Shown here one piece after another: positions 104-63,259 of a stretch of DNA of 64,000 nt. The position numbers were made by a program, and so were the translations under genes. The notes beneath the pieces were generated by a model, which searched no databases, was not told where the DNA came from, and was given only the letters and a program-made list of their open reading frames with translations. Location of the stretch: NCBI RefSeq assembly GCF_001194135.2, contig NC_069001.1, positions 18,709,627 to 18,773,626 of the forward strand, given 5' to 3'. How positions within the stretch are numbered: position 1 is the stretch's first letter; every line of letters begins with the position of its first letter. The stretch comes from Octopus bimaculoides. Taxonomy: Eukaryota.

Positions 104-146
104 CTCACACTGAGGATGGGTAACCAAGCAGAAACTTACGTCTGAG
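104..146 (+). ncRNA. Degenerate type-I hammerhead-like motif (PLE-type)
   Basis: CTGAGGA (110-116) ... GAAAC-TTAC-GTC (131-142). Stem II is partly deleted (TGG-GTAA-CCA-AGCA) and stem I is imperfect (ctcaca/tgag). Confidence 0.45.
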
Positions 147-348
147 CATATCACGTAAGGCTAGAGATGGGAACGATGACTTCCTTTGCAAATGCTATAC
201 GGACAGGAAACTGTGTGTCAATAGCCAGCTGGAAAAGATATTTTCCTGGGCTAAAACAATACTAACATCATCCTTTACAAGACTTCTACATTCTGTTATC
301 ACAAAAATTTTATGTATATATATATATAGATATATAGATATATATATA

Positions 349-690
349 GTGAAGGTGCATGGCTCAGTGGTTAGAGCATCAGATTCACAATCAATAGGTA
401 ATGAGTTTGAATCCCGGACCGGGCTGTGTGTTGTGTTCTTGAACAAAGCACTTTATTTCACGTTGCTCCAGTTCACTCAACTGTAAAAATGAGACGTTGG
501 TGTTAAGCTGCATCAGCCTTTGCCTTTCCCTTGGATAACATCAGTGGTGTAGAGAGAGGTGACTGGTATGCATGGGCAACTATTGGTTTTCCATAAACAA
601 ACTGCCCTGGGCTTGTGCCTCGGAGGGAAACTTTCTCTGTGCAACCCCATGGTCATCCATGACCAAAGGGGATATTTACCTTTACCTTTA
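349..690 (+). mobile_element. tRNA-type SINE, family 1
   Basis: tRNA-like head with A-box (TGGCTCAGTGG) and B-box-like (GAGTTTGAATCCC) motifs, followed by a (CA)n tail. Other copies at 52065-52225 and, for the 3' part, 43105-43192. Confidence 0.85.
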
Positions 691-1584
691 CACACACACA
701 CACACACACACACACACACACACACACACACACACACGCACACGCACACGCACACACACACAGATGTATATACATTGGAGGAAGCATTTATCAGACTGCA
801 TCCACAGTTTGCAACTGTCATATATGTACAGCCAATGTGGCCAACTGTCACAGTAACAGTGATTGTGCTTGCTGGCAACATTGATAGTAACAATAACATT
901 AACTTGGCCAATGATCATTCCCATGCCAAAAGTGCTGGCAGCAGATTTAATGGTAATGGTAATAATAAAAAATGTTACGAATGACAATATTGACACGATT
1001 CACATTAATATGTTAACAAATATTGGTGTTGTTATAGTACAAATAATAATGTAAATATATATATATATATATTTACATTATTATTTGTACTATAAACTGT
1101 AATAATAATTATCTCAGGGCTAACCTTACTGTCCAAAATATTAATAATCTCTTTGACCATAGTTTAATCTTGGATAATATGATTGGATCTAATGATTTTA
1201 CAGAATTTAGCTTGCTGAAACTACCTGTGTGCAGCAGATTAATATCCCTGCTGCTGATACCTGTAACATTAATGTCCACCTCATGTGTTTTGTAATTGTA
1301 AAAACAAACTTCAATGCCTTGTCCATAATTTATGCCTAACTACAAATAGTATGTATGGGTGTGATATCAATACTAACATGATTACATTTACATTTAGGCT
1401 CAGCTGGAAAAGTATTCAAGAATCAATTATATAATCATATCCATATATTTAAGACTTGTGATAAAGCTAAAATTATGTCATGAAAAAATTGGGTAATTGA
1501 AAGATAAAAATGTTGAGTTCCATATTACCTTATATAAGAGATAAATATAGCTGTAGACTTTGCTGCACAAAATTACTGGATATC

Positions 1585-1935
1585 TGTTGTAAAGCGGTCT
1601 TTTTCTACTGTTGTATCTTTCTTTTGACAACGGTTGTTGCTCTAACTGATATTGTTATATTCCGAAATCATCAATTGAATGGTTCTATCTGGCACTGTAC
1701 GACCCCCAGTCATACAATGTTATTATTCCCAAACGGTTAGATCGATATAACATCCACTCAGTATCACAGTATAATTACTATATCAGCACAGACACAGCTA
1801 TCAGCACAGTCTACTCGTACTCTCAACCTTCTTGACTTTCTTGACCTTCTCCTGTTGACTGGCTACTGGTCTATTTATAACGGTTGACTACTACCACTTT
1901 TTACCAGGAAGGGTGTACAGTTTCACTATACAACA
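1585..1935 (-). mobile_element. Solo LTR, Gypsy-related
   Basis: Termini TGTTGTA...TACAACA; 5-bp TSD ATATC at 1580-1584 and 1936-1940; TATAAAT on the minus strand; end resembles the LTR ends of the 8357-13135 element. Confidence 0.85.
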
Positions 1936-60085: not shown

Positions 60086-61249
60086 CATAAAAATTTATGC
60101 AGCAAAATGATGGAATGAACAGGCTTTATTTACAAAGTACAACAATTGTTTCTGTGCAGTGATAACAGCTGTTATTTGCAGAGTTTTCCATATCATATTA
60201 TTACATAAATTATATTAATAATTACATGAATAAATAGGATCTAGCAGCAGCAGCAGCAGCTGTGTACCAGCACATCATCAGGTGATAGCTTTCATAGCAC
60301 TGCTGGATCATGTTCTGTTTCCCATCGTTTTATACAGCTTTGCATAATTAGCATTCTCTCTTTACTGAGTATCTTATAGATACATGGCAGCAAAAGTTAT
60401 AAAAATACACCCCCACCATAAAAAATAAATAAAATACATAGACAGTAAAAAATAAAAAGTTTGTCTCTTTTTTTTTTATCTTAGGATATAGACTAAAAGT
60501 ATTCACTGGAGGACATGTATTCCTATTCCTACAGTTGCATTTTTATATATTATTATTTGCAACCTGGTTTCCCCCTTATATTCCTTTTTCTGTCTTTCTT
60601 CTTATTGTAATTATTAATGTTATTACTACTATTTCTTACTTATGTAAGTGTACATGGGTAAGAGCAATTTAATCACTTCGTGTGTGGTAAGAATTTTAAT
60701 GACTGTTAAAAGACTGATGGGTACCAGGATAAGTGAAATTAAGTTTTAAGAGTAGACGAACAAGCAAGTGGATATCCTGCTGGGGTAAAATGATGACCAT
60801 TGAAGAAAAAGTTACAGACAATAATCTTCTACCTAGCTGGCTCCTTTCAAACTGCCCAACCCATGCCAGCTTGAAAGATGGACATTAAATGATAATGATG
60901 ATGGTTTCTATTTTTTGCTGCCATTATATTTTTTTGTTATTTATATAACTTGTATTGCGTTCAATCTATAAGACACTTGGTAAATTGAAAATGCTAATAA
61001 TGCAAAGGCATATAGAACAATGGGAAACTGAACATGATCCAGCAGTGCTATCAAAGCCACTCACTTGATGAAATGCTGGTACACAGCTGCTACTGCAACC
61101 TTTTTATCTTTGAACTTATTTATAAAATAATTTATGGAATAGTATGATGCAGAAAACTTAGAAACTAACAGCTGTTATGGCTGAGCAGAAGAAATTGTTG
61201 TGTTTTGTAATTCAAGCCTGTTCATTCCCTCTTCTTATAAATTTTTATG
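60086..61249. repeat. Inverted pair of hammerhead-bearing arms (60086-60356 and 60989-61249)
   Basis: Minus copy: CAC-CTGATGA-TGTGC...GCACA-GAAAC-AATT-GTT (60137-60285); the plus copy 61062-61202 is more decayed; spacer of about 630 bp. Confidence 0.7.
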
Positions 61250-61834
61250 TATGTATGTAAGTATATGTGTGTGTGTGTGTGTAAATATAAGTAAAATTCA
61301 GTTGAATTAGGTACTTAAATTGAGGCACCTCATTAGATTGGAATAATATATACATACAACATTATGTAAATGTCAAACTTGGTGCACAAGTACTGGCCAA
61401 ATGATATTCTTGCAGTGTATGTAGACAATTAGACCCAGCGGAGTGAAGAAATCTGCTCTTGACCTATTCAGACATGTATATTATATTAAGTGTACGGTCC
61501 ATAATATTTATGAAGGGCAGATTCTGAGACAGGTGAATAAAATATGAGTAACAGTAGAGGTACAGGTGTCAATCCATTATGGCTGTTTCTAACGACTCCT
61601 TTAACTGATTAATAAAAACATTACATTATTGTAAAGAAACCATTTTGGTCAGATGAATTCACGAACTTTATATTATTACATATATATATGTATATATAGA
61701 TTTTTATATATTATGTATAGGCATATATGTATATCCAAGTTTGTATGATTGTGTATAGAAGAATATATTAATCAATGAAATCCCAGCTTAGTCTGATTTT
61801 CACATTTTATCATTTACAATTTTACAATATTGAA

Positions 61835-61878
61835 ATAAACTAGTACTTTCATGCATACAACGCAGTCATCAGGTTTAT
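61835..61878 (-). ncRNA. Minimal type-I hammerhead with canonical core, family B
   Basis: ATAAAC-CTGATGA-C-TGCGT-TGT-ATGCA-T-GAAA-GTAC-TA-GTTTAT; 6-bp stem I; palindromic AGTACT stem III. Confidence 0.8.
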
Positions 61879-62782
61879 GTAGTGACAGTCATATTCCACA
61901 ATTGACAGTTGTCAATTAGGCACACATGAGCGTACTTAATAGTCATTAAGTGTTATGACCTGATCAACATCCTGAACCCATTCCAGCAATGATTGCCAAC
62001 TATCAAAGAACTTATGACCAGCAGGGGGGCTATGGATGAACTGGTCAGACACTGACACACTCTAAAGTGTGTCCTATTCTAATTCATTGTATTTTGAATC
62101 TCTCTCTATTCTTTGTATTGTATTTTTTCTCTATAATTTTTCTTTTTTTCTCCATTATTTCCTGTTTGTGCCCCCAGTCTAGCAACTTAATCTATTCCTT
62201 GCTATTCTTCATTCCTCCTCAAAGTATTTTAAATACAAATACTACCAACATGCTCTAGTTAAGCTTAAGAGTGAAATGTTAATTGTGGGGAACATTGGAA
62301 TTTATTGTATAGTTTCCCACCCAGAATGTGTTGAAACAATTGTTGTGATAAATAAAGTTTCCAGAATGTTCTATCTTTTGATTTTACTATACTCAATTGT
62401 TTTTATTATACTCAACATGCACTGTGGAACTCCTAACATAGATTCAGTGATGATTGTGCAATTACTGCGGATGATGCCAGGTAGTCATAAACAATGAACG
62501 TGCTTGGCTGGCACACTAGTTGGGACATACCTAAAATGCAATTTAAAATTTTAAGATTTAAATCTAAACTTTAATTATAACTTATATATATATATATATA
62601 TATATATATATATNNNNNNNNNNNNNNNNNNNNNNNNNNNNNNNNNNNNNNNNNNNNNNNNNNNNNNNNNNNNNNNNNNNNNNNNNNNNNNNNNNNNNNN
62701 NNNNNNNNNNNNNNNNNNNNNNNNNNNNNNNNNNNNNNNNNNNNNNNNNNNNNNNNNNNNNNNNNNNNNNNNNNNNNNNNNN

Positions 62783-63259
62783 ATGACGTTGACCACTAAC
62801 GTGGACATATAATGTGCTAGAAATAGATCACATCTTGTGTCTAAAAAGACCTAAATTGTTTTCAACATGAAATATAGCGTGATACCAAAACGTAAGCGGG
62901 CAAGACATTTAAAATCACCGAAAAGGAACATTATTAAACAGGTACCGGTTTCAAATTTAACAATTTAGCAGAACCATATACACACGCACCTATGGCGGTG
63001 GGCAACTTTGTATGGGGTTCTGATGATTATGGTTCCATTACAAATCAGGCTGAAGAGAAATATACAGTCGGTAAGATTGTTAAATTTGAAACCGGTACCT
63101 GTTTAATAATGTTCCTTTTCGGTGATTTTTAAATGTCTTGCCCACTTACGTTTTGGTATCACACTATCTTTCATGTTGAGAACAATTTAGGTCTTTTTAG
63201 ACACAAGATGTGATCTATTTCTAGCACATTAAATGTCCACGTTAGTGGTCAACATCATA
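62783..63259. repeat. Foldback with arms of about 180 bp and a hammerhead in the right arm
   Basis: Arms 62783-62965 and 63074-63259 are near-perfect reverse complements. Confidence 0.9.
63046..63101 (+). ncRNA. Type-I hammerhead with canonical core
   Basis: CAGG-CTGAAGA-G-AAAT...ATTT-GAAAC-CG-GTA-CCTG; palindromic ACCGGT stem III; weak stem II. Confidence 0.7.

Follow-up and report, generated by a model that had tools for sequence, protein, structure and literature searches.

Families of short non-coding repeats with type-I hammerhead motifs, resembling Penelope-like elements and retrozymes, in a 64-kb stretch of the Octopus bimaculoides genome

Massive populations of minimal hammerhead motifs linked to Penelope-like elements (PLEs) are already established in metazoans. 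These motifs are of type I and combine a long helix II with a short helix I and a tiny palindromic helix III; they occur mostly singly in truncated PLEs, sometimes as opposite-strand pairs, their activity is low and dimer-dependent, and a U3-A8 covariant of the core has been published (PMC4209133). PLE insertions bring pseudo-long terminal repeats (pLTRs), inverted 5′-truncated copies, microsatellite targets and ensuing assembly problems (Craig et al., PMC8557442), and retrozymes are known from a bivalve (PMC7229834), while a 2026 preprint traces those of vertebrates to PLE pLTRs (10.64898/2026.07.22.740005). In the hammerhead and PLE literature searched, we found no description of cephalopod hammerheads. 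Here we analyse 64,000 nt of the Octopus bimaculoides genome (contig NC_069001.1, positions 18,709,627 to 18,773,626; this whole stretch is called the window), in which a sequence-only reading had listed about 14 hammerhead-like motifs and had proposed a large population of short ribozyme-bearing PLE derivatives. We consider it likely that the window samples at least four families of short retroposed elements without coding capacity (A, C, D and E), that each family bears a type-I hammerhead motif near its 3′ end and that each is mobilised in a PLE- or retrozyme-like manner.

Both strands of the window were searched with an RNAMotif-style type-I descriptor, which required a helix I of at least 4 bp, CUGANGA, a helix II hairpin of at least 3-4 bp, GAAA, a hairpin or palindrome as helix III with an A15.1-U16.1 closing pair, and any nucleotide except G at H17. 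The strict form matched at 16698(-) and 63050(+) (sites are named by their cores); 5852(+) and 61872(-) appeared once a basal helix II mismatch and a single helix I mismatch were tolerated, 16000(-) once helix II could be long and the palindrome could contain G.U pairs, and 53756(+) with the U3-A8 core covariant. Together with three decayed copies of a further family, C, the sites are as follows.

5847-5891, plus strand (site 5852(+)): family A minimal hammerhead, found by descriptor; predicted cleavage between 5886 and 5887
61833-61880, minus strand (site 61872(-), read from 61880 to 61833): family A minimal hammerhead, found by descriptor; predicted cleavage between 61841 and 61840
15917-16005, minus strand (site 16000(-), read from 16005 to 15917): family A-like hammerhead with a 60-nt helix II insert, found by descriptor; predicted cleavage between 15922 and 15921
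16647-16705, minus strand (site 16698(-), read from 16705 to 16647): family D hammerhead, found by strict descriptor; predicted cleavage between 16654 and 16653
53750-53796, plus strand (site 53756(+)): family E type-I hammerhead with U3-A8 core, found by descriptor; predicted cleavage between 53790 and 53791
55685-55765, plus strand: family C copy with a G8A core lesion (CUGAUAA), right arm of an inverted pair, recognised from genomic reads
55591-55671, minus strand: family C copy with a U4C core (CCGAUGA), left arm of the same inverted pair
6660-6740, minus strand: family C copy with two core lesions (CCAAUGA), from sequence reading and self-BLAST
63043-63104, plus strand (site 63050(+)): uncertain hammerhead-like site, descriptor match

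The six descriptor matches all carry the core C3U4G5A6N7G8A9 (or its U3/A8 form), G12A13A14, A15.1-U16.1 and H17, a rule that the family C consensus also follows and that four other candidates considered below (110(+), 54557(-), 56065 and family B) do not. Three helices with an open helix I, the arrangement of type I, were required by the descriptor and are present at the accepted sites, and none of the accepted motifs runs across an assembly gap. Five C3-G8 motifs in the window compare with a mean of 0.195 and a maximum of 2 in 200 dinucleotide shuffles (6 versus 0.8 with the U3-A8 core included). Because real DNA is rich in inverted repeats, the unshuffled window was also searched with 539 decoy cores, scrambled without change of composition; these matched 0.14 times on average and 3 times at most. 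The enrichment of hammerhead motifs in the window is real. Rfam hammerhead models applied to the whole window on both strands returned no match at the gathering threshold and none at E <= 10, and the only sub-threshold Rfam matches were microsatellite or hairpin 'miRNA' look-alikes. A search of this kind, with shuffled controls, had been proposed in the sequence-only reading.

The coordinates listed in that reading do hold the sequences described, and five of them (5848, 61835, 15917, 16649 and 63046) are the ends of complete motifs, although motif quality is very uneven. Half of the 14 motifs are supported (four intact, three decayed with an intact consensus), one is uncertain and six are rejected; 53756(+), absent from the list, adds one site. 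A palindromic helix III, which had been singled out, is supported (AGUACU, AGUAUACU and ACAGCUGU); the uncertain 63050(+) has ACCGGU.

Family A combines a helix I of 5-6 bp and a helix II of 5 bp with AGUACU as helix III. Its two clear window copies, 5852(+) (ugaac CUGAAGA U-UGCAU-aguuua-AUGCA-U GAA AGUACU A/gugca, with the slash at the predicted cleavage site) and 61872(-) (acauaaac CUGAUGA C-UGCGU-ugu-AUGCA-U GAA AGUACU A/guuuauuu), belong to one element and are homologous over ~370 nt (self-BLAST and alignment). To view the family beyond the window we used genomic reads from three runs of the same species (about 0.7x sampling), and because these were recruited by sequence similarity, not structure, the family-level evidence is not circular. 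Read depth over family A was about 200-280x, no variant reached 12% in the core, helix II, GAAA or AGUACU, and a G>U difference at 5889, present in ~90% of copies, restores the stem I pairing UGAAC/GUUCA that is mismatched in the window copy. Relative to the consensus, stem I of 61872(-) carries a compensatory G-C to A-U change, and across three family members stem I shows three compensatory double changes (UGAAC/GUUCA, AUAAAC/GUUUAU and UGCAG/CUGCA). One subfamily has a longer helix III that is still palindromic (AGUAUACU) together with a canonical helix II closure. The related 16000(-) has the wobble-palindromic helix III ACGUGCGU and a helix II that folds by itself at -17 kcal/mol; among transcribed copies of this type, N7 is the only variable core position, and variation elsewhere in the motif is confined to the helix II insert. 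All three copies have microsatellites 30-200 nt downstream, in the case of 16000(-) a (TA)n(TATC)n(CT)n tract 33 nt away, and 5852(+) lies at an inverted pair (5729-5858, self-BLAST) whose left arm has zero genomic depth at 5800-5811. Separately, RNA reads join 16122, at the edge of the assembly gap 16123-16536, to an inverted or repeated 15934-15938 of the 16000(-) element, a hint that the gap conceals an inverted or tandem copy; the reads could stem from other family copies.

Family C (helix I 4 bp, helix II 8-12 bp, helix III ACAGCUGU) is represented in the window by copies that each have a distinct core lesion of their own, two of them in a head-to-head inverted pair (55477-55875, self-BLAST); at 55685-55765 helix III is damaged as well (ACAGUUGU). 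Genomic depth reached about 1900x per run, and the majority letters (G8 at 55694 in ~88%, U4 in 65%, C at 55757 in ~74%) restore the core CUGAUGA and the perfect palindrome ACAGCUGU (74%), giving a consensus that satisfies the full descriptor. Some 35% of the genomic copies have C at the U4 position; GAAA does not vary, and most of the variation falls in loop 2. Units stop 13-26 nt past the cleavage site, and read depth climbs toward the 3′ end, to which alignment breaks in loop 2 could contribute. In the minimum free energy (MFE) structure of the consensus dimer, an intermolecular 8-bp helix III (ACAGCUGU) forms with both helices II intact (-61.1 versus 2 x -26.1 kcal/mol), a double hammerhead in silico. 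A metagenome scan for further family C copies returned 0. The copies at 6660, 55591 and 55685 are thus decayed members of a very abundant repeat with an intact hammerhead consensus.

Family D has a helix I of 5-6 bp, a helix II of 7+3 bp and a 3-bp hairpin as helix III, as seen at 16698(-) (uuugugc CUGAAGA, helix II with the loop UUUU, then GAA ACUAUUAGU A/gcauaua). At a genomic depth of about 250-450x per run, only N7 (A/U) varies in the core, and in ~80% of copies G-C takes the place of a stem I G.U pair. At 10.1/11.1, where G-C is the usual pair of natural hammerheads, families D and E have A-U. Estimated from the read depth, copy numbers are in the hundreds for families A and D and in the thousands for family C, which bears out the proposal of a large population of short hammerhead-bearing repeats that lack an open reading frame (ORF). 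Most of the window copies are dead relics with private lesions.

Family E, at 53756(+) (gugaug UUGAUAA ACCAU-aaaa-AUGGU GAA ACAUCAAUGU C/caucau), is the only site matched by an Rfam hammerhead model. The alignment of Hammerhead_HH9 (RF02275) to 53738-53813 takes in all 77 model positions, from stem I and the helix II hairpin with its A-rich loop to GAAAC and helix III, but its 32.4 bits (E 3.8e-07 on an 81-nt stretch) fall short of the gathering score, 52; on comparable short stretches no hammerhead model matched 61872(-) (151 nt), 16698(-) or the architectural twin of 53756(+), a site at 1103 of another O. bimaculoides locus (L001) in which stems I and II differ and still pair. The motif lies in a tandem repeat:

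53690-54375, plus strand: head-to-tail dimer of ~340-nt units, from self-BLAST and alignment, adjoining (TA)n at 53589-53627

The two units (53690-54035 and 54030-54375) are 72% identical where 53735-53951 aligns with 54076-54288 (self-BLAST); the first holds the intact hammerhead and the second has lost helix II and GAAA after a 12-nt deletion. The dimer thus matches the retrozyme layout of head-to-tail 150-450-nt repeats with a type-I hammerhead, with the ribozyme of unit 2 deleted. An RNA joint from 54105 to 53769 was considered as a circle and rejected, being a mosaic from copies without the unit 2 deletion.

We compared these families with the closest described systems. They share with the PLE minimal hammerheads (Cervera & de la Pena 2014, PMC4209133) a type-I arrangement with a helix I of 4-7 bp and a helix II of 5-12 bp whose basal junction is irregular, a helix III that is minimal or palindromic and implies dimer action, massive numbers of dispersed copies that are mostly single motifs but include opposite-strand pairs 100-700 bp apart, and the U3-A8 core, found here in family E and in three related PLE loci. 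They differ in the symmetric 10.1/11.1 mismatch of families A and C (as against a single unpaired 5′ nucleotide), in the 34-60 nt inserted into helix II of family C and of the 16000 variant, and in having no flanking PLE ORF in this window. Metazoan retrozymes without long terminal repeats (LTRs) (Cervera & de la Pena 2020, PMC7229834; Li et al. 2026) resemble what we see in their tandem units (~340 nt here, 350-390 nt in the mussel host), in a type-I hammerhead such as that of family E, with a 6-bp helix I, a 5-bp helix II and low GC, and in coexisting with PLEs in one genome; unlike them, the array here is only a dimer, with its second ribozyme destroyed, no back-joint is seen at the family E cleavage site, and the core is U3-A8, not C3-G8. 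The satellites of newts, Schistosoma (Sm-alpha) and cave crickets likewise have a 1-bp helix III capped by the palindromic loop AGUACU and act as double hammerheads in multimeric transcripts, yet they form long tandem or SINE-like arrays with canonical loop-loop contacts, whereas the window copies are dispersed and truncated and their tertiary-contact motifs are not recognisable. HH9 itself is a single-copy, conserved amniote intronic ribozyme, in contrast to the repeat found here, and no Rfam hammerhead model, Hammerhead_1 (RF00163) included, scores families A and D. Families A, C and D accordingly are of the minimal PLE type (short helix I, long helix II, tiny or palindromic helix III), and family E is of a more canonical design, with its U3-A8 core and a tandem dimer like that of an animal non-LTR retrozyme.

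How closely the window families are tied to PLEs was assessed from PLE coding sequence in the window and in five PLE loci elsewhere. Three stop-free segments resembling reverse transcriptase (RT) at 56.4-59.2 kb on the plus strand led to a remnant that the sequence-only reading had overlooked:

56239-59286, plus strand: decayed PLE RT remnant, with coding pieces at 56239-56823 and 58699-59286, from homology
55993-56333, minus strand: inverted copy of 59411-59822, a pLTR-like flank of the PLE remnant, from self-BLAST at 88% identity

The remnant has internal stops, is split by a repeat insertion and the gap 57701-58292, and is truncated before the GIY-YIG region. In a read-through search its best matches were 54-62% identical (E 1e-86) and came from Octopus, Argonauta, Saccostrea and Mytilus. 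These homologs carry RVT_1, HTH_animal and GIY-YIG domains, of which the window remnant retains RT and HTH parts, and one of them (P0010) is above the Pfam cut-offs for RVT_1 and GIY-YIG. RVT_1 plus GIY-YIG is the canonical architecture of endonuclease-bearing (EN+) PLEs. The flank copies, ~340 bp long, bracket the remnant and both end in microsatellites. Searching 120 homologs against the window with tblastn recovered only this remnant (56.2-59.3 kb); no window ORF of at least 120 aa is PLE-like, Pfam found nothing in the stop-free segments flanking the candidate hammerheads, and the remnant has no detectable hammerhead.

An RT plus GIY-YIG host element for a hammerhead was seen only in related loci. 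At L002, which holds tandem and inverted PLE copies, a hammerhead lies 157 nt past the last stop codon (agca UUGAAAA GCCGUAUUGGC GAA AGUACU U/ugcu, followed by (TA)n), with the same helix III, AGUACU, as family A; in L004 (Octopus vulgaris) and L001 (O. bimaculoides), U3-A8 minimal hammerheads follow the coding remnant at distances of about 585 and about 725 nt, respectively. In all three loci the motif is on the ORF strand and has a 6-nt palindromic helix III, and no hammerhead was found in L003 or L005. Many repeat families of the window recur, at 65-85% identity, in the O. bimaculoides locus; L002 has none of them. Separately, positions 174-211(+) of L004 hold a C3-G8 hammerhead-like match with an AUAU helix III (uuuuccuu CUGAAGA ... 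GAA AUAU A/aagguagg), far from the PLE remnant. The label 'PLE-type tails', used in the sequence-only reading, therefore rests on analogy with PLE loci elsewhere, because no window hammerhead adjoins a PLE ORF; a PLE origin of families A, C and D is suggested by their design and insertion context. That context includes microsatellites or (TA)n beside the copies and head-to-head inverted pairs at 55477-55875 and 5729-5858.

Transcription was assessed in three RNA-seq runs, each sampled at about 6%, from libraries that look unstranded and are not enriched for circular RNA. Coverage ranged from 1-3 reads over 5852(+) and 20-50x, from diverged copies, over 16698(-) to about 280x over the 16000 type; at the family E cleavage site (53790 to 53791) there was no circular back-joint among only about 10-20 reads, all from diverged copies. 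Ends at the NUH sites had been proposed as a check; none of the three runs showed a pile-up at a predicted cleavage site. For an active PLE hammerhead of the anole, which cleaves in vitro with protein help, RNA-seq ends were likewise reported to be absent (PMC11167929). The RNA-seq result neither supports nor refutes cleavage; catalysis is unproven because RNA-seq shows no ends at the cleavage sites.

In the mechanism that we propose for families of PLE- and retrozyme-like elements, source copies would be transcribed as read-through or multimeric RNAs, from which hammerhead cutting after H17 would free unit-length RNA; types with a palindromic helix III would act as a double hammerhead between two copies, probably with protein assistance. 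The RT/GIY-YIG protein of autonomous PLEs would then copy the RNAs into AT-rich or microsatellite targets, often yielding the 5′-truncated and head-to-head inverted insertions that are seen as 'foldbacks'. Catalysis, dimer action and mobilisation by PLEs are all inferred here, and several observations weigh against this account. By tblastn, 0 window hammerhead sites adjoin PLE coding sequence, BLAST of the window families against the five PLE loci gave no match, and the core in those loci is U3-A8, as against C3-G8 in families A, C and D. Nowhere does an Rfam hammerhead model attain its gathering score, and families A and D are unscored even on short stretches. The 10.1/11.1 pair is non-Watson-Crick in family A (U.U or C.U, consensus included) and an A.A mismatch in family C, even in the consensus; the MFE structure of the family A consensus dimer is not hammerhead-like and shows no double hammerhead. 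In roughly half of the family D copies, stem I is mismatched (C.A) at 2.3/1.3. Over few linked sequences, the stem changes observed were three compensatory double changes in stem I of family A, G.U to G-C in family D and, as a disruptive one, the C.A of family D. In the RNA-seq data, reads cross the predicted cleavage site between 15922 and 15921 at full depth without an end pile-up, and at four loci neither read-end pile-ups nor back-joints mark the predicted sites, at depths that are mostly low.

A bolder alternative starts from the conserved oddities of families A/16000-type and C, namely the non-Watson-Crick 10.1/11.1 pair and the helix II inserts of 34-60 nt. These families could represent an octopod lineage-specific, abundantly transcribed new structural variant that depends on dimers or proteins, and that cleaves in no other way, with RNAs (family E circles included) that make up a sizeable class of non-coding RNA in cephalopod tissues; we regard this as rather unlikely.

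We consider it unlikely that the motifs are chance look-alikes in ordinary repeats of the short interspersed element (SINE) or miniature inverted-repeat transposable element (MITE) kind, spread by transposition and with no catalytic role, their apparent conservation being that of young copies of one master sequence. Such an origin would fit families A and D going unrecognised by Rfam models, the helix II junction mismatch of families A and C and the lack of a cleavage signature in RNA-seq; moreover, three of the five C3-G8 matches come from one family, and there are therefore fewer independent events than matches. It sits poorly, though, with full architecture in at least four unrelated families against a decoy-core mean of 0.14, with N7 as the sole variable core position in two families, and with subfamilies that vary the length of helix III while keeping it palindromic and vary stem I with compensation. 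The related PLE loci also share the design, on the ORF strand and downstream of the ORF.

The inverted repeats raise a different objection, that the stems are DNA-level features of foldback or MITE DNA transposons and that GAAAC plus a palindrome is a terminal inverted repeat or target motif. Many sites do lie in large inverted repeats (5729-5858, 55477-55875, 60086-61249 and 62783-63258), half of 63050(+) falls in 97%-identical arms, and the palindromes of family B lack a hammerhead core. Yet the inverted partner is specific to the locus in families A and C, as the zero depth at 5800-5811 illustrates, and family C units stop 13-26 nt beyond the cleavage site whatever the partner; stems I and II lie inside one arm and not between arms, and truncated head-to-head copies are what has been published for PLE insertion (PMC8557442). 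We judge this account very unlikely. That the motifs are host-domesticated regulatory ribozymes, like the intronic HH9/HH10 of amniotes, is scarcely credible: 53756(+) does align to HH9 and the 16000 type is well represented in RNA-seq, but each family has hundreds to thousands of diverged copies, the window copies are lesioned and lie among transposons and microsatellites, and no gene context was found, with nothing from Pfam in the flanks.

Among the remaining candidates, 63050(+) (aaucagg CUGAAGA, helix II, GAA ACCGGU A/ccuguuu) is uncertain as a hammerhead: its helix II is weak, a loop of about 21-25 nt held by 3-4 A-U pairs, and of the whole motif only the 3′ half (GAAACCGGUACCUG) belongs to the inverted repeat 62783-63258, whose arms are 97% identical and whose mirror arm has no core. 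Six sites were rejected. At 110(+) a 4-nt AGCA insert precedes GAAA, helix II has 2-3 bp and stem I 2 bp; at 54557(-) CUGAUGA is present and GAAA absent. Family B (60137(-), 61062(+) and 52431(+)), which had been read as a core-variant hammerhead, has 'GAAAC + ACAAUUGU' and lacks the 5′ core, with no CUGANGA even in the read-built consensus; a single 1.16-kb inverted repeat (60086-61249, self-BLAST) has 60137 and 61062 as its mirror arms. Site 56065 has no GAAA, and its indel is in only one of two inverted copies. It fails equally as a hammerhead relic of a PLE tail: its UUGAAAA...GCCG...GUACU is faintly like L002, yet homology to the L002 motif is undemonstrable because the site is in only one of the two copies and GAAA is absent.

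Two further observations concern these repeats. In many genomic copies of families A and B, a perfect 30-nt palindrome, AGGTTCGTCCATCGATCGATGGACGAACCT, follows on (read overhangs at 5883-5916 and 60141); it was not found in the window or in loci L001 and L002 and could be a head-to-head junction or a separate hairpin element. The repeat at 54278-54640, which includes the rejected 54500 site, had an RNA-seq depth of about 1300-3500x (6% of each run) and is probably SINE-like.

The window is otherwise rich in mobile elements. A Ty3/gypsy LTR retrotransposon occupies 8336-13062(-), with 282-bp LTRs (8336-8617 and 12778-13062) that are 87% identical, ORFs with rve integrase and RVT_1 matches, a 266-nt inverted repeat (9825-10090) and, by eye only, a gag-like ORF with a CCHC-type zinc knuckle. 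An RT fragment of long interspersed element (LINE) type lies at 22974-23657(+) (RVT_1, 81 bits) and a Tc1/mariner-type transposase remnant at 32423-33082(+) (Pfam HTH_Tnp_Tc3_2), with further remnants of that type recognised by eye only at 14196-14582(+), 55059-55359(+) and 63779-64000(-). Long stop-free segments at 17519-19342(+) (about 600 aa in pieces, including a 202-aa ORF) had no Pfam match and may be a decayed transposase-like gene. A GC-richer repeat of about 1-1.5 kb has at least six window copies (3866-4735, 27526-29210, 40764-42025, 43917-45051, 46582-48031 and 52859-53626) and also occurs in the O. bimaculoides locus L001. The 11-nt tandem repeat AGTAAATCCAT at 24524-24654 and 25278-25445 flanks the gap 24694-25277, which probably lies inside one satellite array; among other gaps, 57701-58292 splits the PLE remnant and 62614-62782 abuts the left arm of the 62783-63258 inverted repeat.

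The cephalopod families described here are new members within known hammerhead populations, from which they differ modestly, in the symmetric 10.1/11.1 mismatch of two families, the long helix II inserts and the U3-A8 core of a retrozyme-like tandem. What is new is a set of sequence families with thousands of copies, not a new class of system. The results bear mainly on annotation, since neither ORF tracks nor Rfam gathering thresholds reveal the elements, and also on assembly, because inverted and tandem insertions coincide with gaps; they also offer candidates for biochemistry on unusual hammerhead junctions. A cephalopod genome thus likely carries the PLE/retrozyme hammerhead populations known from flatworms, cnidarians, bivalves, fish and amphibians.

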